A stretch of DNA of 64,000 nucleotides, from NCBI RefSeq assembly GCF_000315625.1, contig NW_005434472.1, forward strand, positions 1-64,000. Reading direction: 5' to 3'. Positions 1,710-19,153 of this stretch are shown in pieces. The translations under genes were made by a program, and so were the position numbers. The notes under the pieces are model-generated. The model saw nothing but the letters and a program-made list of their open reading frames with translations, was not told where the DNA came from and made no database searches. The DNA comes from Guillardia theta CCMP2712. Taxonomy: Eukaryota > Protista > Cryptophyta. Each line of letters begins with the position of its first letter. The first letter of the stretch is position 1.

Positions 1710-4700
1710 CGACCTGGACGTAGAGCACGAGATGGTAACGCATCATCTCCTCGAAACCTTCCGAACTGAGACGGCGAATCAGAGAGGGAAGGGAGGGCGG
1801 GGAGGAGGAGGCAGGAACGAGAAGGAACGACAAGCCGGGTGCAAGAGGGAGAAGAGACTGGGTGGGGGGTAAGAGGGGAGCAAGTACAGCTGACGGGGAG
1901 AGAGGGGGGAGGCAGGACTCGAGGAGCAGGAGCAAGACAGGAGGAGCAGGACAGGAAGAGCAGGAGCAGGAGCAGGAGGAGAAGCGACGTGCGTCCAGGG
2001 GGCAGGAACAGGGACCTTAGACATCCGTTGGAGTTGCAGAAGGAGAAGTTGGGCCCAGCAGTGAGGACATGGTAGTCATCGGGAGAGAGGTGAATCTGAC
2101 CCACGAGCGGAAAGTAAGTCGGGGATGGAAGGGGAGGAAGAGAGGGGGAGGGAGGGAAGGGGAGCAAGAGAGAGGGAGGAAAGGGGGGGGGAGTGGAGGA
2201 GGAGGGAGGGAACGAGTCCGGCAGGGCGTCAGCAGCTCGCAGAGGTTTGAGAGGTTGTCAAGGTCTCGTACCTGAGCATCCTTCGAGTTGTGGGTGAGTT
2301 TCTTCAGGCCATCTGCAAGCTCGTTGAACGTGACTGGCTCTGCGTCAGCAACCTCCTCCTCCTCCTCCTCCTCCTCCTCCTCCTCCTCCTCCTCCTCCTC
2401 CTCTTCGTTCGTCCCCCTCGCCCATCCCCTTCCTCCCTCAAACGTTTCCCCTTGCTCACTTTCTCCGTTGCTGTCCAGGTCGAGCTTCTGGTGACGAGCG
2501 GGTTGATCAGAGCACGAAGGCAGAGGGCGGAGGAGGTAACACAGGGAAGGAGAAGAGCAGGCAGTGAGGCATCAGGCTGCAGGAGCGAGAGTGAAGGGAG
2601 AGGGGGATGGAGGAGGCAGCAGGAGGCCAAGGAGACAGGCAGATCGCAGCAGGCAAGGGACATGAGAAGGGTCCAGACCTCGTACAAGCTTAAGATCCTT
2701 GCGGAGAGATCCGCCGAGGTCTTGAAGCTCGCGAGGTTGCAGAGGAGGGGATCCAGCGCTGATTCCTTCTTGAACGAAACCTTGAGGCAAAAGGTCACCG
2801 TTACCTCTCACTGCAGGACCCTCCTTCCGTCTTCCCTTGCCCACTACCACCACCACCACCACCACTGTCCCCTCCTCCTCCTCCTCCTCCANNNNNNNNN
2901 NNNNNNNNNNNNNNNNNNNNNNNNNNNNNNNNNNNNNNNNNNNNNNNNNNNNNNNNNNNNNNNNNNNNNNNNNNNNNNNNNNNNNNNNNNNCCGTCCTCC
3001 TCTCTCCTCCACTCCCACTCCTCCTCCCTCCTCCTCTCCTCTCCTCTCCTCTCCGCTCCCTCTCCTCTCCTCTCCTCTCCTCTCCTCTCCTCTCCTCTCC
3101 TCTCCTCTCCTCTCCTCTCCTCTCCCCTCCTTTCCTTGCTCACCTCCATCATGCTCTCTGCCATGCTGCTCTTCACTTCTGCTGTCGTCTGCACGAACTC
3201 ATCGAGCAACACGGCCACAACTGGAATTCGCATCTCAGGGAGGAAACGGAACATCCCGGTCACCGATGTTCATCATGACGATCCCCGTGATCAGGTAGTA
3301 GCTAACAAAGAAGAAGTTGATCTGCAGGAGGAAGCAAACTTGAGAAGGATGCAGGCACTTGCAATGGAGCAGCAGAGGGTAGGAAGGAGGGTGGAGGACA
3401 GGCATAAGAGAACTCGATAGGAAAGTTGGAGCAGGAGCAGAATTGGCGGCGCAGCAGCAGCGGCAGGGCTCGTCAACAACCGGCAAATCATGGGAGAAGA
3501 CTCCAGTGTTCATAGGGCGAACGATGTTCGTCACCCAACCGTCTCCTGTCGCGATCTGAAACATCTGATGCCCCAGTTAGCACGGCAGGAGAGCGAGCGG
3601 GAGGGAAAGGAGAGGAGAGGACAGAGGTAGCTGGAGCAGGAGCGGCAAAGATAGAGGTAGGGGGGGCAGGAGCGGGAGCGGGATAGGCTAGGACGGTGGT
3701 ACCGAGCGAGGATGGGAAAAGGAGTGAGATAGCGGGAGCGGCAGCGGAAAGGACGGAGGTAGCAGCGGCAGAAAGGACGGAGGTAGCGGCAGCGGGAGAT
3801 GAAGGGGGGGGGGAGAGGAAAGGTACCGTGAACAGGGCGAGAGAGAAGCTGCCGAAAAGCTCCTCGTCCTCGGCTCCGAAGAAGATCACGGCCATCACCT
3901 TCAACCGCCCAGCATCAGGCCCAGCACATCTCCGGCTGGTGACCCACCGCGTAGAGAGATGAGAAGAGGAGGAGGATGCAGAAGGCGTTGGCGACCGGGA
4001 CGATGGCGGACGTCATGGACTGAACGATAGCGCGCAAGGAGGGCATCTTCTTGAACAAACGAACCACCTGCGTCCCACTAAGTCACCGAAGACTCAAAAC
4101 TCCTGCTCCTTCCTGTCCAAAATTGTACACAGCTGTCTCGACCTCCTCCTGTTTTTCTCTCAACTGGCCCAAAGGATTCTACATCATCCCCTCCTGACTT
4201 TCCTCACCCCATCCTTGTTCTTCTTTCTCACCCTTGCCCTCCTCCTTGTTCCCCTCCTCCCAGATCCTTGTCCTCTTACCCGAAAGATACGGACGAGACG
4301 GAGGAGGCTCACTCCAGGGAGGTTCTGGATCATGAGAGAAACGATGGAGATCACGACGACGATGAAGTCGAAGACCTTGCAAGACACCAACAAGTCACTT
4401 CTCTCCCCGCCTCTTCATCTCTTTCCCTCACATTCCAACCGTCCAGGAAGAAGGAAAGGGGGCCGGTTGATATCAGGTTTGCGACGAGCTCCAAGGAGAA
4501 GATGACTATGAAGAAGATCTCGAGGGAATCGAACACATGGGACGTGCTGCTCCCGCTCGTTGGGAGCAGCTGGTAGTTGAAAACACTGACGAGAAAGTTG
4601 AACATGATGAGGAAGGCAAGGAAAAACTGGACGGGAGAGGACGTGTAGATCGTCCTGACACGGTACTGAAGTCTCGACCGCTTCCCCTGCATGGACTTGA

Positions 4701-5253
4701 GCCTCTTCTCCTCCTGCCTCTTGCAGTCCTGGATAGCACGCGACCACAGCATGCACGCCTCGTTGCTGGAAGCTCGGAGGGTGTAGGTCCTCCCGCTATT
4801 GAACCCGTTTGCCACTGTGAAGATGTTGAAAACCCGTGCCTTCGAGGGAGGGGTCTCTCCCACGTTCCCCAGCATGAACGTGCTGGAGGACTGCTTCTTG
4901 TCAGCGCGGGCATGCGCGAGGAACTCTTCCTCATGCTCCATCGAGACCGTCACCACGTCCATGATCGGGATCACGTCCGAGACTTCTGCCCCTGGTCTCC
5001 GCGCGAAGGAGATGGCGTCTCTACCGAGCGCTACATACCTCGGCCGCCAAGTCAGCTCCAGAGTCTGCTTCTCCAGCTCCCCCTCCAGCACCAAGTCGTC
5101 CCCCGTCGGCAGCTTCCCCCATCCCATGGACAGCCCGCTGAATCCTCCCGGGGCTTGCGGGGAGAGGAGATCGTCCGCTGCAAACTCATCTTCGGTCTCC
5201 GCGGAGATGTCTACTTGCAGGCCTTTGCTGCCCCGCCAGGTTGAGGTAACCAT
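728..5253 (-). CDS. Single-domain (6TM) voltage-gated cation channel (EukCat/BacNav/CatSper-like) with N-terminal PH domain, C-terminal EF-hand(s) and coiled coil; multi-exon
   Basis: Exon 5253-4432 encodes a PH-like domain (LEGELEKQ..WRPRYVAL..RTYTLRASSNEACMLWSRAI) followed by S1-S2 and FFLDGWN. Exon 4375-4280 gives S3/S4 VFDFIVVVIS..LLRLVRIFR and the exon from 4067 continues VVRLFKKMPSLR. Pore loop FGSFSLALFT|MFQIATGDGW; S6 FFVSYYLITGIVMMNI|VVAVLLDEF; EF loop DLDSNGEITFNE across the intron at 2459-2334. Start and 3' end uncertain. Confidence 0.85.
1489..1710. repeat. Compound tetranucleotide microsatellite (GCCA)n-(GGCA)n inside a channel intron
   Basis: Directly visible tandem repeats. 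Confidence 0.95.
2892..2991. other. Assembly gap (100 N)
   Basis: N run flanked by CT-rich microsatellite. Confidence 1.
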
Positions 5254-11176: not shown

Positions 11177-12881
11177 GATCTGGTCATGAAGGTGGCTGTG
11201 GGAACGTCAGCAGGGAAGGAGCTAGAAACCTAGAGCCCCACCTCCTGGTTTCATCTTTTCTCCGAATCACCATCAAATTTCAGCGGATGAGTCCTAATGA
11301 CAAAATGCACCCACTTGCTGCCAAATTATAAAGTTCACAGATAAAAATCAATTGTTTTTCTCTCAAGCAAGCAAATGTGTCACGAATCTTCGAAACCTGT
11401 GACAGAGTTAATGGAGAAATTCACGGTCAATGAGAACAATCCTAGTGGTACAAATAAAGATAATCTAAGTCACCATCATCAGCCATCAATGCAGCTGGAA
11501 CGTATCAAACAATCAACAGAATGCACAGGAAAAAATCACTGCAATTTTTTCACGAGTGCAAGAGCATCATCTTGATTCAATGCCAGAAAACGAGAGAGAG
11601 AAACTGTCATATGACATGTCTCCTTCTATCGAGGCTCTAGTTTCATCAGAGATCCATGCTTAAGCTCCCCAGACGGTCTACGAACAGCATGACGCCCCTC
11701 CCTCTCTCTAAGGAAAGCAAGAAAACCCGTTGCAATCTTTGTGGGTCCTACCACCCCTACCCACAAATCCCATGATTTGTAGGGGTGGGTGCGGGATGAT
11801 GTGCCCCGGGTCCGGGATCCCGGGGTCCCGGGCCCAGCCAATCCGACTCAGCTGCTTCTTACAACTAATAATAGTAGTATAAATCCGTTACAAATCATCT
11901 AGAACCGTTTCCTCTATCTGGCTGCCAGTTCAGTCAAAGGTCAAACTCACCCCCCACACCCACCCCACCCCCCAGCTACCCATTTTATGCTTCTCTAGAT
12001 CTAACCCCACCCCTCTGTCAACTTCAAAAGTTCCTCACCACGTGATCGGACCCGTTTATATCATACTGGCAGACCCACCCATAAAACTACCCCACCCCGA
12101 GTCAATGCGTATTTGTAACCATCAATTGACCTCTACCCTACCCTCATTTGCTCGCTTTGCCTCGTCACCACTACAACTCTCGCTCAGTCGAATAGCAGTG
12201 GTGGTGACCCCACCCACTTCCAGCCTTCGCACCCCACCCCGACGTGTCCTGACTTATAAGGGGTACTCCAGCTGTTCCCTAAAACTTCAACTACCGGTGG
12301 TATCGACAGAGAACAACCCTACCCCTAGGTTCACCGCTAACTCTACCCACGATTGTAGGCAAATCCTACTACACCTGACAGACCCCCACCCCCTCCTGTT
12401 CTAAGCATGCCTCACACGTTTATCCATTATACTACCCCTACCCACTATAAACCTGCCTTTGATACTACCACTACCCATAAAAATCCCTAAAAGTACCCCA
12501 GCGAATTCCGCCTAATTGGCTCCTCTCGGGTTCAGAACCCCCACCCCCACCATGAACAATGGAAAGGAGAACGTTTTGTGGTGATAACGGGGTTACAATC
12601 ACTTCCATTCTAGACCACCCTCCCATTCTCCCATTCTACACGATACAATCTGTGGGTAGATATGATTAAAAAGAAGATAACTAAACATTGCTCTATTATC
12701 GTTCAGTACTATCGTTCTCATTTCCACAAGGGGGATGGAGCGACTGCATCTTCAAGCATGTGCTTGACCTTTACCTATAAAATTTCAATATTTCATTTAC
12801 ATTTCTAAATATGCTTTGAGTTATAGAAATCAACGCTGAGACTCCCGAGCCTCGGGTGCTATCCATGGCGGCGGGAAGGCT

Positions 12882-15800
12882 ATGAAGAAGCATATTATCC
12901 TGAAGCACGCGGGCACCTCCCCCCTCCCTGCTTCTCCTCCTCTTCCTTCGTCTCCTTCATTGAACCCCAAGGAGTCTTGTGGCCTCACGGTGCATTCTCC
13001 CAGCCAGCCGGCTGGGTGGGAAACCGTCTCCGATGGATGGATTGGCTTCAAGAAACTTCGCAGATTTCTGGAACATGGAGGGAATGGCGCAGTGGTTCCC
13101 GATGGTGAAGATAATGGAACCAAAAGTCATGGACTTGTAGATAGAGTTAATTGCTCTTCACACGGAGGAGTGGTTGTCGAAAGCAAACAGACCGGGAAGC
13201 CCGAAGTCCCTGCCCTGCAAAGCGATCACAAGGCGGCAGAGAATGATGCTGAAGGTAATGATCTTCTCTCCCTCGTGTTCGCATGAACGACTTTCCTGAT
13301 TTGTTCTGCTCAGGAGCGTGTGGGCCGAAGGAACTGGCTTCTGAAAATGCGGGGAAGGTTTGGCCGAAGAATGGAGCACAAACAGAGGTCAAATCGCACG
13401 AGGATGTTGAGACTCCCCCGTCGGAGCATGCTGCTAAGGTGAAATCTTCTTGTCGACCATCTCATAGACCTGACATGTTCCCCCTTCATTTTCGATGCTT
13501 CCAGAAGGAAAGTTCAAAAGCCTCAGAAGAGCCTTTAGCTCAAGCGGACGAAGTTCGCAGTGAAGATGTGTATGTCAAGGAGGATGTGCAAGAAAAATCA
13601 ACCAGCCTTAGAGAAGACCGAAAATCTCAGAACAAGGGTGAAGAAATGGAAATGCCTGCATTGGAGGCAAAGATTGGTGGGGCGTGGTTCGACATCGAAC
13701 TTCTCGGTGTTGATCCAGACGAGGACTTGTTCCATGTTATGGGAAGGGATACGGGTGAAAAGGAATGGGTGACTTGCCAGGAGGTGAGATTGCAGTGCCA
13801 GCCATACGAGAACAAGCCTAGCGTTGGTACGACAGTCTGCTTGTTTCGGACCGCCGACAATGAACAGTTGTACTACGACGCAGTTGTTGATAGTGAGAAA
13901 AAGGACAACAAATTCTTCGTCACACTGCTTGATGGACCAGAGAAGGGTAAAAAGGTTGTTGCCAAGCTCCAAGACATCTATGAAATCAGCAGCGAAAAGC
14001 TACCTATCTCGTCATTACGATCGTGGTGCAAGGCAGTGTACAGAAAGGTTGATTCGCTACCAAAAGTTGTAAACCTCAAGAAGGGTGATTATGCCATGTT
14101 CGAAGCTCCAGGAAACGAGAACTTTCGAGTTGCTCAGCTTCGGGAGCCCTACACAGCTGAAATTCAGGAAGAGGTCGACGAGGACGAAGATGGACCTGAG
14201 ATTCGTGTTCGGTGGATGTTCACTGCGCAACAACTCAAGAAAAAGCGAAAGAAATTGCTCAAAGGGGAGGACACAGACGAACATGAGGTATTTGTTTCAG
14301 ACATGGAGTCGTTGATAGATGCCAGACTCATCGTAGATCAATGCTTCGTGAGTATTGTTGAACACCCTCCGGACACAAAGGATTGGGCCAACAATCGGTT
14401 TTTTGCCAACAGGGTTTTTGATCGTTCAGAATACAAGATAGTTTCTATTTCTGATGAATCCCTTGATCTGAAGCTAAAGAAAATCGTGAAGAGGCTTCTC
14501 TCTCGCAACAGAAAAAACGGTGATAAGGTCCACGATGCAGAGGATGGAAACGACATTGATTCGCATGAAGTCCAGAAAGAAGATTCGACCCCCGCACATC
14601 GGAAATCAAATCATTCAGATGCTTCAATTGATCATCCTTCCAAGAAGTCGCTTCCTTCCGGTGAAGAAAGCAGTGAAGATTTCACCAAGAATCCAAAGCA
14701 AGTAAAGGATAGGCTATCTAACAAAATGCCAGCTAAGGAGAATGCTGTTCAAGTTGTGGCGCACGACGATGAAAAGCGGTCTCCAAGCGAAAAGAGCCAC
14801 AACAAGGGAGATGAGAATGGTAGTCGCAAACGAAAAAGTAGTGAACTGGATGATACCGCGCGTGCTGAGAGTGAAGGGAGGTGCAAGAGTGAAACGAACA
14901 AGCGCAGTCCTAAGAAATCACATGGGATCTCGCCAGCGCAGGTGTCGGCAGATCGAAAAGTTAAGCTGGAGAAGGAGCCTCATTTGCAGAAGATAGGCAG
15001 TACTACGAAACGCGAAGATGTTGATGAGAAAAGGGACAAGACGACGACGAAGTCAGATAGTAACAACAAACGGTCTGAAAAGAATGTTGTGATGGAGCTC
15101 TCAATCCCCAAAGTGGGGTCGAAGCAATCAAAACCATCCTCAGGTGAAAATGAAAAGAGGATAACCAGCCACGAGAAGGCTTCTGGAAACAAGAAAGAAA
15201 TCAAGAGAACAGAAGAGCTTCATACCAAGAATGACAAGACATATCCCCCAAAGCACAATGCTTTAATTAACACGTCTCTAACTTCAGACATGAATTCGCA
15301 TGCAGATACACAAGCTAAGACGGGCGGCATTAGGTCGGCAGCGACAATCCAGGCAATCCAGGGAAATTCTTCAAAAAAGTCCTCCTCGGGGGGGATACAG
15401 CAAGAGCATCATAAGCAGACTGAAGGAGGCAAAGCTTGCAGTCAATCTGCAAGTTCACTTCCATCCAAGGTCGATAATGCACATGTGAAGTGCAACATCA
15501 ATAACTTGGGTCATGATGTTGAAATTTCAAAGGGGCTAGATGACGATGGAACAAGTCGCAACTTTGACGCTTTGACGAATTCCTGTGAACTAAAATTAGG
15601 ATCCCCGCGCAAAGACTCAGTTGAGATGTACGACCCAGCAGAGATCTCTGACGATCTCGACGCCACAGTTGTGAAGAAGCGTACAAGTCCAGTTTTTGAT
15701 CATGGCCAGACTGATTCTGAGTCGGGACGGAAATACGGACCGGAAACCATGTCGGACTGTCCCGCAACTGATGAAGCTGACCATCAAGAATCGCAGAACA

Positions 15801-16879
15801 CCGTGAAGGCAAGTAAGAAGCCGCTGACGACTTACCTCCCTGAGCTATCCCTCCCAGTCCTACCAGGATTGGCCGACCATGGCCATGAAAGGACACAAGA
15901 GACGAAAGAAAACGACAACTTTGAGAATCGGGGGTCTGAGAGGAAGCATTCAAAGCCCGCGGACTCTTCTTTTGGGAATGAGAAGTCCAAGAGACGCAAG
16001 ACGACGGCCCATGTGCAGTCTTTCCGCATCTCGATCCTGCAGTGCAAATGGAAGTTCATTGCGTATCAGCACGTGGATGGGGGGAAGAAGGTTGAAGATG
16101 TCAGCTTCGGAGAGGGCGAGAATGTCCATTGTGCGCTGAGCTTCCGGGACGACCGGGACAGAGCCATCTGCGATGAGCAGACCATCACAGCGGTGACTAA
16201 GACGCTTCGCTTCCTCGTCTCCGGTGCGAGCTCGACGGACCAGGATGAAGTGTTGACACCCTTGGAGACGAGCTCGTTTGGGGAGGTGTTCTGTTGTCAG
16301 GTGAACATCGGGAAGGCGGGGACGTACACCCTTCAGCCCTTCCTGGTTGACGACAAGGATGTCAGGCACCTGATTGGCTCTCCGGAAAGGGTCGTGATCA
16401 CCCCAGGGAAGGTGCCTCTGCTCTGTTCGGAAATCTCTTTGTTCGAGGTTGGACGAGGACAGAAGCTGGTCAGTCTATGCTCGCCTCCAGGCTCAGGGTC
16501 AGCCGAGCAGGTTTGCGCTGCTGGGATCGTGTCACGTGGCGCAAAGATTGAGGTTGAGATCTCGTTCAATCCAGCCCACTGTGGGGATGGAGGGAAGATA
16601 GATGAGAAGCAAGCGCAACGAGTCCTTTCGCAGCTGCAAATGCGCTGGGTCAAGCCGGTGCAACTCAAGGAGGACGTGTGGAAGGCTGGTGGCTCTGAGG
16701 GCTCGAGCGTCTGCATGGCAGCGGAGGTGGTTGAGGTAAAGCCGCAGATGCTGAGCATGACCGACTCGTCCGCCCGGGTTGCCTCGTTGCAGTTTGACAT
16801 CGTCGGATGTCATGTACTTGTAGCCAAGTTCGACGATGGGCCGAAGACCTTCCGCTTTGACTTAGCTTGTTGTGTATAA
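12882..16879 (+). CDS. Chromatin reader: SAWADEE-like tandem Tudor + BAH domain + long charged disordered region + filamin/Ig-like C-terminal domains
   Basis: 1198-aa ORF 13283-16879 joined in frame to ORF 12882 through a GT-AG intron at 13255-13313. LEAKIGGAWFDI..EWV..VRLQCQP..VGTTVCLF..EQLYYDAVV is the SAWADEE pattern. LKKGDYAMF..FRVAQL..IRVRWMF..HEVFVS..IVDQCFV..FFANRVFD is the BAH pattern. AGTYTL..HLIGSPERVVITPG is filamin-like. True start may lie further upstream. Confidence 0.75.
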
Positions 16880-16895
16880 ATAGGCAATCGAGACA

Positions 16896-19153
16896 TCATT
16901 CCTTGGTGATTGAGGGGTCGATAATGGTTGGCTTGGGCTCGGCGACGCCGCCCCGGACTGTCAAGGCTCCTAACCCCCAGGCAAGGTAGCCGACGGCCAT
17001 GTTCCTGCATGAGGAGCGAGTGAGCGGACGAGACCCGCGAGTGCGAGCGACTGACAGGCAGGCGGCGATCTGAAAGTGTACGGTCGTCTTGATGAACCTC
17101 GACACTGACCTGCCGTCAACACCAAGACAAGCCGCTCTGTCTACATCCTCCACCCTCCTGTCATCCACCCTCCCACTCCCCTTCCTTCTAACCTCCCACC
17201 TCCCTCGTTCCCACTCACTCTTCTTCTCTCCGTAGTTGAACGAGTCATGGCTGTCGCATCGTCACGCCAGGCAGCGACCGAGGAGGCTCAAGACCTGAGA
17301 GCGTCGCAGATGAAAGCCACGAGGGATCGGAGGACCTGGAGGTTCAGACCAATCAGGCACTAATGCTGAGGAAAATAACTCGAGGAGGAGGAGAGGAGGA
17401 GGAGAGGAGGAGGAGAGGATTGTAGCAGCAGCAGGGGAACGACACTGTTTTGACTAGAAACATGATGCGGGGGAAGAGAAAGGGCGTGAGACTGCGAGAC
17501 CAAAAGGAGGGAGAGGAGGAAGAGGAGGGAGAGGAGGGAGAGGGAGAGGAGGAGGAGGGTAAAAACCGTCTGTCTTGTACTGTGACCCAAGAAGTATCTC
17601 CTGACTTTGAAGTCCACATGCGAGAGCTCTTCCCTGTTCGCATCGTCACCACCGGCCTGCTTCCTCCTCGCACCCTCCGACGAGACTGACATGCTCTTCA
17701 GGTTGCGATAAAATTCTCTCCTCCCCGGCAGCGGCTTCGGGAAAATCCTTCGGAGGAGGCTGGGCCGCTCGTGGCTCGTGAGGAGGACTAGCCCTCGATA
17801 CCTCGCCTCCTTCTTCCCCTTCTGGCCCCGCCCACCTGCTGCAGAGAGTTGGAAGCAGCTACGGGTAAGCAGCAAGGAGGGCACTTGAGATCTGCTTCGT
17901 CTGCAGCGTCATGTTGCGGTCGCCTGAGCGCGGCCGTCAGGCTCGCACTGGGAGAGAGAGGAGGAGCAGACCGCAAGAAGACTGTAACCTGCCCCCAATT
18001 ACGAGCTCCTTCCACTCTCTCTCGACATCTGTTGAGTTGCACATCACAGCTCACTCCCCCCAGGTCGCCCTCGCACCTTGTCCCGCCAGTCCTATCCACG
18101 TCTTGGCTTCTTCCAGCCTCCTCTCCGACAACCTGGCGGCTTCGCTCCCCACCAGCACCTGCTCGACTGTCACCCTGCTTGCCCTCGAGGCCCGCAAAGT
18201 CGCTGGAGCTTCACCGGGTTGATCAGCGCGACCGTGCGGTGCTCGCTCTGGTTGTTTCCTGCCGCTGCGATCAAGAAAGACAACAGCAGGTGAGGAAGTG
18301 GGGTTAGGGGTGGGTGGGGGGGAAGGGAAGGTTTCAGAGGAGAGAGGGAGAGGGGTAGCGGGAGGTCAAAGGGGGGAGGGGAAAAGGGTCACCGTGAAGC
18401 CTCCACATCTCCTCCATCACTCTCATCGCCAAGTTGCTGCAGCGGACGAAAGTCAGCGAGGCAGGAGCTGCCCTCACGCGCTCCGACCTCGCGAGCTCAT
18501 TGCCGACGACGGCGATGCGCTGCTTGTCCACCGTCGAGCAGTTGGTGAGCCAGCTGCGACTGAGGGTGAGGGAGCGATCGGGTCAGAGCTTCTCACTTGT
18601 ATGCTTCCATGGCGTCGTCAAGAGCCCTCTCGCATGAGAAGCCCTCCGACGCCAGTTGCGTCCCGCTGTGCATGACCACCAGCGTGTGCACCCCTGCGTC
18701 GCTGCCAAGACGTCATGCCCGCACCAGGAGGGAGGAGGAGAGGGGACCGAAGAGCATACGCAAGGTCCTCCCAGCTGTCTACTCCCGGAGCTCCTGGCAG
18801 CAGCCTGACAAACCTCTCACTGTCAACCCGCCAGCACTCCCCTCCTACAGTGCTGCCGGTGCCACAGTTTGGGAGTGCCGGAAGGGAGGGATAAAGAGTC
18901 GAGCGAGCAAAGGCCTCTCCTGTGCCTGCTGTCACAAGGGGACACGAGGGGAGGAGGAGAACCTGTCTGATCCTGACGTTGACGAGGCTAGCATGCGAGG
19001 AGAACTGCCACCACAGTCAGCGTCCCATGCTCGTCAAATCATCCTCTCGGTCACCCTGGGCCATTCAGAGTATGCAGTGCATGTCTGCACGAGGAGAGCA
19101 ATGACAGCAAGCACTGCAACTGCTCGTCGTCTGTTGAAACTCCCGTTTGCCAT
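16896..19153 (-). CDS. Hypothetical multi-exon protein with predicted signal peptide (could be two genes)
   Basis: MANGSFNRRRAVAVLAVIALLVQTCTA signal-like start followed by many short exon-like segments; no family recognised. Confidence 0.35.

Follow-up and report, generated by a model that had tools for sequence, protein, structure and literature searches.

A SAWADEE-type tandem Tudor joined to a BAH domain in a likely chromatin-associated protein of the cryptophyte Guillardia theta

Textbook accounts present SAWADEE as a domain of plants that serves to recruit Pol IV. In animals, BAHCC1 and TNRC18 are Tudor-BAH cassettes, in which the Pfam family PF21744 (BAHCC1-like_Tudor) lies beside the BAH domain. 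In this work we describe a gene of the cryptophyte Guillardia theta CCMP2712 whose product carries a SAWADEE-type tandem Tudor and, directly after it, a BAH domain. The gene lies on the plus strand of a stretch of 64,000 nucleotides of the nuclear genome (positions 1 to 64,000 of contig NW_005434472.1, NCBI RefSeq assembly GCF_000315625.1), which is called the window in what follows. A preliminary description of the window, made from its letters without database searches, had pointed to the pair of domains as a dual histone reader apparently outside land plants.

The SAWADEE domains of SHH1 and SHH2 (PF16719; PDB 4IUQ-4IUV and 7EEZ-7EF3) have a tandem Tudor-like fold, and Y140 and Y212 of SHH1 belong to the pocket for dimethylated lysine 9 of histone H3, H3K9me2 (PMC12902148). 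The conserved Cys and His residues of the second SAWADEE lobe were already pointed out by Mukherjee et al. 2009 (PMC2775110), and the homeodomain-SAWADEE subfamily has been traced to the ancestor shared by Klebsormidiales and Phragmoplastophyta (PMC11712027). The BAH domains of AIPP3, SHL and BAHCC1 are readers of trimethylated lysine 27 (H3K27me3), for which the criteria are an aromatic cage (Y149, W170 and Y172 in AIPP3) together with His198 and Asp200, two residues that recognise S28 and P30 of the histone (PMC7718874). Proteins combining Agenet and BAH are known in plants (PMC4634149). In a chromatin survey that used Pfam thresholds, the SAWADEE reader class was assigned to 'Plantae s.l. 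+ Cryptista' (bioRxiv 10.1101/2021.11.30.470311).

The tandem Tudor and the BAH domain

The gene has three exons, which give 1290 codons (1290 aa) with no internal stop, and it is transcribed and spliced. Residues are numbered in the open reading frame (ORF) that starts at 13283, and the numbering of the mature protein is obtained by adding 92 from residue 75 onward. Sequence searches were run on single exons. The parts of the cassette are the following, with the confidence of the AlphaFold2 model given as predicted local distance difference test (pLDDT).

13661..13792, plus strand: Tudor lobe 1 (ORF residues 127-170, with E128, W135, F136 and D137; AlphaFold2 strands at pLDDT 81-89)
13832..13984, plus strand: Tudor lobe 2 (ORF residues 184-234, with Y197; AlphaFold2 pLDDT 75-93)
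14006..14026, plus strand: short conserved helix 'LRSWC' that joins the Tudor pair to BAH (AlphaFold2 helix, fragment residues 122-128)
14054..14518, plus strand: BAH domain (ORF residues 258-412; cage Y290, W311 and F313; M341 and S343)

The strings quoted in the preliminary description are present in frame +2 at 13661-13888 (ORF residues 127-202), and the likeness to SAWADEE that had been read from them by eye proved to be far above chance. Up to E 10, the window protein matches no Pfam family other than SAWADEE, and this match has 16 bits against a gathering threshold of 28 bits (E 0.013, residues 133-208). A sub-threshold match of this kind recurs in every relative scanned, i.e., the Hanusia protein (15.3 bits), the relative P0002 (16.0 bits) and the proteins from Rhodomonas (21.9 bits) and Baffinella (18.9 bits), with E-values from 0.022 to 1.9e-4. 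Searching the PDB with the single sequence (residues 1-466) returned noise only (E 0.5). When all PDB sequences were compared with a profile made from the Tudor part of nine cryptophyte relatives, the matches were maize SHH2 (30 bits, E 3.1e-6) and SHH1 of Arabidopsis (E 2.2e-4 and 7.3e-4). The next match stood at E 0.44, and chains of UHRF1, FMRP, SETDB1 and Agenet were all missing up to E 10. An exhaustive run of this profile over 1.84 billion representative proteins gave 74 matches at E <= 1e-3. The 37 longer proteins among them were scanned with Pfam: 24 carry SAWADEE (best E 3.1e-48) and the rest are multi-Tudor/Agenet repeat proteins. Moreover, hhalign against 14 canonical SAWADEE domains drawn from these matches gave a probability of 98.0% (E 1.6e-13) along 126 columns that extend across both lobes. 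The motifs common to the window protein and SHH1/SHH2 are 'EA..AW(Y/F)D', 'EW(V)', 'R.(Q/R)S.P', 'G..(V)L..' and 'LY.DA.V'. On this sequence evidence, which carries the assignment, the N-terminal domain is a SAWADEE-type tandem Tudor.

The fold agrees with this assignment. An AlphaFold2 model of the Tudor+BAH fragment was built on four sequences, and its Tudor pair has a pLDDT of 75-93. The Foldseek neighbours of the Tudor model are SETDB1, SHH1/SHH2 and UHRF1, with template modelling scores, taken by target, of 0.61-0.68 for SAWADEE. In VIA-align, ranks 1-8 are all held by SHH1/SHH2 (Z 12.7-13.5, root-mean-square deviation 2.1-2.5 A, 108-114 residues, 25-27% identity; for SHH1, Z 13.5 and 2.2 A over 109-112 residues), followed by UHRF1 (Z 10-11.8), FMRP (10.8-11.5) and the tandem Agenet (9.4-10.2). 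The structural comparison that the preliminary description had called for thus returns something other than a generic Agenet or Tudor as best match, although the margin of SHH1/SHH2 over the next match is a modest 1-2 Z units. As regards membership of SAWADEE, specific homology over both lobes and a fold closest to SHH1/SHH2 were found, and the score stays under the Pfam threshold.

Plant SAWADEE domains share six invariant Cys/His columns in the alignment of the canonical set, including those of a segment 'HD.RGCRC' between strands of the second lobe. This zinc site is said, by Law et al., to be unique to SAWADEE. The window protein has none of the six columns in the alignments, in line with the absence of the zinc-binding insert claimed beforehand, and the 'HD.RGCRC' segment between strands 2 and 3 of lobe 2 is deleted. 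The other non-plant SAWADEE-like proteins that were compared are likewise free of the zinc site. Besides this, the window protein differs from SHH1/SHH2 in its sub-threshold Pfam score, in having no aromatic residue in the segment that matches F162/F165 of SHH1, and in its architecture, with no homeodomain in front and a BAH domain behind.

The Pfam BAH family (PF01426) has no match in the window protein, even with E allowed up to 10. The Rhodomonas relative passes the cut-off of this family (35.7 versus 30.8 bits), and BAH is listed in precomputed domain tables for the whole short clade, one of the two paralogue clades described below. A family BAH profile of 12 sequences, compared with the PDB, matches AIPP3 (7CCE, E 4.3e-11), SHL (5ZNP, 2.8e-7) and BAHCC1 (6VIL, 3.1e-6), and lower down ORC1 (1.5e-3) and TNRC18 (7.9e-3). 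Through this family profile the sequence does belong to the BAH family, and the claim that a BAH domain follows the Tudor pair directly is borne out. In the BAH domains of its best matches, AIPP3, SHL and BAHCC1, the window protein finds its likeness also at the cage, where the positions are aromatic: Y290, W311 and F313 stand for AIPP3 Y149, W170 and Y172, with a change from Tyr to Phe at the third position. The linker helix in front of the BAH domain is conserved as well, L125 and C129 being invariant in 9/9 relatives and R126, S127 and W128 being kept in most. Taken alone, the two domain assignments (SAWADEE-type and BAH) seem to us very likely to be right.

Relatives of the cassette

The closest relative of the window protein is a Hanusia phi protein with 93% identity over the domain region, and the family has further members in Rhodomonas abbreviata, in Baffinella frigidus and in G. 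theta itself. Outside cryptophyte sequences, the Tudor+BAH cassette turned up only in transcriptome and metagenome sequences that cluster with them. A Tudor+BAH profile retrieved only the cryptophyte family and one metagenomic SAWADEE-like protein, with no plant Agenet-BAH protein and no animal protein, among proteins of 165-525 aa.

A maximum-likelihood tree divides the family into two paralogue clades with 100/100 support. The long clade, which sits on a long branch, is formed by the window gene, Hanusia P0001 and P0002, and the short clade by the Rhodomonas and Baffinella proteins, Hanusia P0008 and G. theta GUITHDRAFT_101575. Since Guillardia and Hanusia each have one gene per clade, the duplication is old. 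Within the long clade, the cassettes of Guillardia and Hanusia are 94% identical over 300 residues, and the whole proteins about 61%. The short G. theta paralogue, GUITHDRAFT_101575, is intact at G000:C7:1212565-1213555 (minus strand), with a complete cassette and the full Y/W/Y + H/D signature in its BAH domain. The NCBI model of this gene (P0010) skips the middle of the Tudor domain, and the locus has a 43-nt intron and a probable in-frame intron within lobe 1. A third G. theta locus, G000:C42:594948-595343 (minus strand), agrees with the family profile in the BAH part alone (E 1.4e-7) and falls within an open frame of 626 aa.

In plants, SHH1 works with a separate SNF2 protein, CLSY. The G. 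theta protein GUITHDRAFT_149568 (P0060) contains SAWADEE at 47 bits, above the Pfam cut-off, and then a chromodomain and a CHD-type SNF2 motor, so that in this case the reader is fused directly to the remodeller. Zinc-less SAWADEE-like proteins are also found in marine metagenomes (P0028, P0042, P0044, P0055 and P0057; 27.8-35.7 bits for the four that were scanned one by one), and by profile comparison the window domain stands nearest to this group (hhalign 99.5%, E 1.6e-22). Like the window family, GUITHDRAFT_149568 and the metagenome proteins have zinc-less SAWADEE-type domains outside plants; unlike it, most of them pass the Pfam SAWADEE cut-off (29-47 bits, with P0044 just short at 27.8), none matches the family BAH profile, and no Pfam BAH was found in those scanned. 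The window family is the only zinc-less SAWADEE-type group found with a BAH fusion in the searches with the BAH and Tudor+BAH profiles. The metagenomic genes lie on compact marine contigs (567-2825; 3455-4837; Tara Oceans among them), adjoining a gene for a 1359-aa PHD protein. One member of the metagenomic cluster is filed at NCBI under a metagenome-assembled genome of Promethearchaeia (Asgard); the 1.5-kb contig that bears it is most likely eukaryotic and mis-binned.

The occurrence of a SAWADEE-type domain outside land plants stands, given that G. theta is a cryptophyte, but it is not a first. In the literature searched, no SAWADEE+BAH protein was reported, and SAWADEE and Guillardia came together only in the survey cited above (bioRxiv 10.1101/2021.11.30.470311), which, because it used Pfam thresholds, would count the G. 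theta CHD protein and not the window protein. The suggestion that the gene points to the origin of SAWADEE is weakened as a novelty, with SAWADEE in Cryptista already published and the CHD protein passing the Pfam cut-off. What is new is the SAWADEE+BAH architecture and the family assignment, whereas SAWADEE in Cryptista and Tudor/Agenet+BAH cassettes elsewhere are already known. In the plant Agenet+BAH proteins and in animal BAHCC1 and TNRC18, a Royal-family reader also adjoins BAH in one polypeptide, so that a combined reading of two chromatin features is plausible; the window family departs from them in that its Royal module is two-lobed and of SAWADEE type, and in that it appears restricted to cryptophytes. 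The window family, the SAWADEE-CHD protein and the marine zinc-less group together indicate that the SAWADEE fold, along with its N-terminal motif, predates the plant role in RNA-directed DNA methylation (RdDM) and is more modular than that role, and that the zinc site is a plant elaboration. The finding refines the existing picture and brings no surprise of principle.

Ligand positions, proposed function and rival explanations

Residues of the Tudor pair were matched through the HMMER alignment to the SHH1 chain, whose index plus 123 gives SHH1 numbering. The pairs are E130 with E128 of the window protein, W139 with W135, Y140 with F136, D141 with D137 and Y212 with Y197. Law et al. reportedly found in 2013 that F162 and F165 complete the K9me cage of SHH1 and that E130 and D141 contact unmodified K4. 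Judged from the residues retained, the K4me0-type pocket looks preserved in the window protein. In the short clade, the segment of F162/F165 has one Phe ('ARDFPDE'). The clades differ at the BAH domain too: the short clade keeps all five residues of the H3K27me3 signature ('RW(L/F)Y' and 'S(F/L)H(R/K)D'), including at the G. theta locus of GUITHDRAFT_101575, and in P0002 of the long clade the His/Asp pair is absent and the third cage aromatic is lost ('RWFPTA').

The marks that such domains read could exist in this organism. The H3 genes of G. theta encode the canonical tail ([30 protein letters not shown]; [10 protein letters not shown]...AARKSAP), and the genome contains, above Pfam cut-offs, one match to Pre-SET (38 bits) and two to the EZH-type preSET_CXC (29-31 bits). 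A look for DNA methyltransferases, which had been proposed as a check, gave two C5-DNA-methyltransferase matches, again above Pfam cut-offs. From these genes, H3K9 methylation, H3K27 methylation and DNA methylation are plausible in G. theta. We think it likely that the window gene encodes a chromatin-associated protein with a SAWADEE-type+BAH cassette, in which the BAH domain is of the subfamily of AIPP3, SHL and BAHCC1, and whose docking on histone H3 we infer. The protein is probably nuclear and associated with chromatin. The cassette would dock on the H3 tail or on the nucleosome, where the Tudor pair could hold the unmodified K4 region through the retained pocket of E128, D137 and Y197 while the BAH domain could hold a methyl-lysine in the cage of Y290, W311 and F313. 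The Lys/Ser/Glu-rich region and the C-terminal region behind the cassette may act as a scaffold or effector, or may recruit a partner.

Several points weigh against this proposal. The window protein is under Pfam's own thresholds for both SAWADEE and BAH. The segment that matches SHH1 F162/F165 ('VMGRDTGEKE') holds no aromatic residue under any alignment, the alignment of this loop being itself uncertain; a K9me cage in the style of SHH1 or UHRF1 could therefore not form in the same way, and the SHH1-like cage of the window gene looks incomplete. In the BAH domain, M341 and S343 replace His198 and Asp200 of AIPP3, and the same is seen in the Hanusia orthologue. As for the models, the BAH part has low confidence (pLDDT 28-56, four-sequence alignment), and the C-terminal region, with a mean pLDDT of 41.9 in AlphaFold2, is too poor for a fold search. 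The claim of a bivalent heterochromatin reader thus fares unevenly: E128, F136, D137, Y197 and the BAH cage speak for it, and the missing aromatic of the F162/F165 segment and the Met/Ser in place of His/Asp speak against it. Because the long paralogue has neither the two cage Phe of SHH1 nor the His/Asp pair, its mark specificity has probably drifted from the textbook pairing of H3K9me with H3K27me3 towards an altered or relaxed one. The short paralogue (the clade of GUITHDRAFT_101575), which keeps more of both signatures, is the better candidate for that pairing.

These same losses could be taken further, as those of a degenerate or re-purposed reader, in which the long paralogue would have given up methyl-lysine reading in one or both domains and would bind unmodified H3, nucleosomal DNA or the acidic patch, or a non-histone partner, with the lineage-specific C-terminal region giving the real function. 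The empty F162/F165 segment, Met341/Ser343 in place of His/Asp, the third cage aromatic lost in P0002, the long branch of the clade and its clade-specific C-terminal region are all consistent with this. However, the cassette is under strong constraint, since it is 94% identical over 300 residues between Guillardia and Hanusia and the rest of the protein about 61%, and E128, F136, D137, Y197, Y290 and W311 are retained. We consider this explanation possible but rather unlikely.

An extension of the chromatin-reader proposal is more doubtful still. It holds that the cassette, above all in the short paralogue, is a single-chain bivalent reader that would bind K4me0/K9me with the Tudor pair and K27me3 with the BAH domain on one H3 tail, that cryptophyte heterochromatin would be co-marked by H3K9me and H3K27me3, that the zinc-less form would be the ancestral SAWADEE from which the zinc-bearing, homeodomain-linked SHH form of plants derives, and that the long paralogue would be neofunctionalised with a new effector tail. 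As a whole we think this improbable.

The likeness to SAWADEE could also be read as convergence at the level of the fold within the Royal family, the protein then being a generic tandem Tudor or Agenet of the Agenet-BAH type known in plants. This would fit the Pfam score of 16 bits, the absence of the zinc site and the ranking by Foldseek of the SETDB1 and UHRF1 Tudors alongside SHH1/SHH2; language-model neighbours point the same way as leads only, the ESM-Atlas feature search returning plant Agenet(+BAH) clusters at scores of 0.84-0.89 (0.87-0.88 for the Agenet+BAH clusters), which is below evidence level. We nevertheless hold it to be very unlikely, since the PDB profile search finds SAWADEE chains only, with no Agenet, UHRF1, FMRP or SETDB1 at E up to 10, hhalign aligns both lobes to plant SAWADEE at 98%, the exhaustive search returns canonical SAWADEE proteins at a library-wide E <= 1e-3, the eight best structural matches by Z, which also have the highest identity, are SHH1/SHH2, and the Tudor+BAH profile retrieves no plant Agenet-BAH protein among proteins of 165-525 aa.

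Finally, that the protein functions as SHH1 does, recruiting a Pol IV-CLSY-like small interfering RNA machinery to H3K9-methylated chromatin in an RdDM-like pathway of cryptophytes, is scarcely credible to us: the homology of the reader domain to SHH1, the C5-DNA-methyltransferase-like loci and the fusion of SAWADEE to a CHD-type SNF2 remodeller in G. theta speak for it indirectly, but Pfam finds no homeodomain in exon 1 or the ORF, nor any other trait of SHH1 besides the reader domain, the SHH1-like K9me cage looks incomplete in the window protein, and Pol IV is, to our knowledge, known only from streptophytes (PMC10533338). The analysis revealed no connection with Pol IV or RdDM, no search aimed at Pol IV, CLSY or RDR orthologues having been made.

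Returning to the chromatin-associated reader as the preferred explanation, we know of almost no functional chromatin data for cryptophytes, and a pair of readers in one exon gives a testable handle on co-occurring histone marks in their chromatin. In addition, two paralogues with and without the residues of H3K27me3 specificity amount to a natural experiment on how BAH specificity evolves.

Gene structure, transcripts and downstream regions

The complete gene is composed of the following features.

12882..13254, plus strand: exon 1 (start codon at 12882; 124 codons + 1 nt; N-terminal region conserved with Hanusia phi)
13255..13313, plus strand: intron 1 (59 nt, GT..AG, ends GTAATG..GCTCAG; joint 13252->13312, cut +2, in the transcript contigs of three runs)
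13314..13438, plus strand: exon 2 (125 nt; transcript-contig pieces 13312-13436, cut +2)
13439..13504, plus strand: intron 2 (66 nt, GT..AG, ends GTGAAA..TTCCAG; joint 13436->13503, cut +2, three runs)
13505..16879, plus strand: exon 3, including the stop codon (uninterrupted; codes for the Tudor pair, the BAH domain, the disordered linker and the C-terminal region)
14540..15982, plus strand: Lys/Ser/Glu/Asp-rich, probably disordered region (ORF residues about 420-900)
15983..16876, plus strand: C-terminal beta-rich region (ORF residues 901-1198)

Exon 1 was recognised by comparison with Hanusia P0001, whose residues 1-135 match 12882-13271 with 59% identity (tblastn/BLASTP) in a frame that differs from that of the main ORF; no Pfam domain was detected in it in the Pfam scan. 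Transcript contigs from three independent studies start at 12854-12869 on the 5' side and are spliced at the end of exon 1. Exon 3 is covered by contig pieces at 13503-17003 with no gaps and no differences, and raw RNA-seq reads (2026 run) cover the 3' end of the gene on the plus strand. The possibility that the Tudor-BAH fusion is an artefact of annotation or of the ORF was considered and is ruled out, because both reader domains lie in exon 3 and transcript contigs cover it unbroken.

The mechanical ORF extends over 13283-16879 (plus strand, 1198 aa) and reads through intron 2, which is in frame and free of stops (ORF residues 53-74). Translations based on ORFs in the G. theta genome can therefore carry unspliced inserts of 22 residues, as happens with this hidden intron at 13439-13504. 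The Hanusia paralogue P0008 has a similar insert of 16 residues within its Tudor domain.

The disordered region behind the cassette contains 9-23 hydrophobic residues per 100 (in 100-residue blocks), has no Pfam match, and is conserved only with the Hanusia orthologue. For the C-terminal region (298 residues) there is no Pfam match either, and jackhmmer finds only Hanusia P0001 and P0002, i.e., the long paralogue clade only. This beta-rich stretch of about 300 residues is possibly a new domain.

At the 3' side of the gene, the transcript contigs show a further joint of 51 nt at 17003-17055 with CT..AC ends, and the same contigs span both genes. The joint is that of an intron in a gene on the minus strand, which either adjoins the SAWADEE-BAH gene at its 3' end or overlaps it there.

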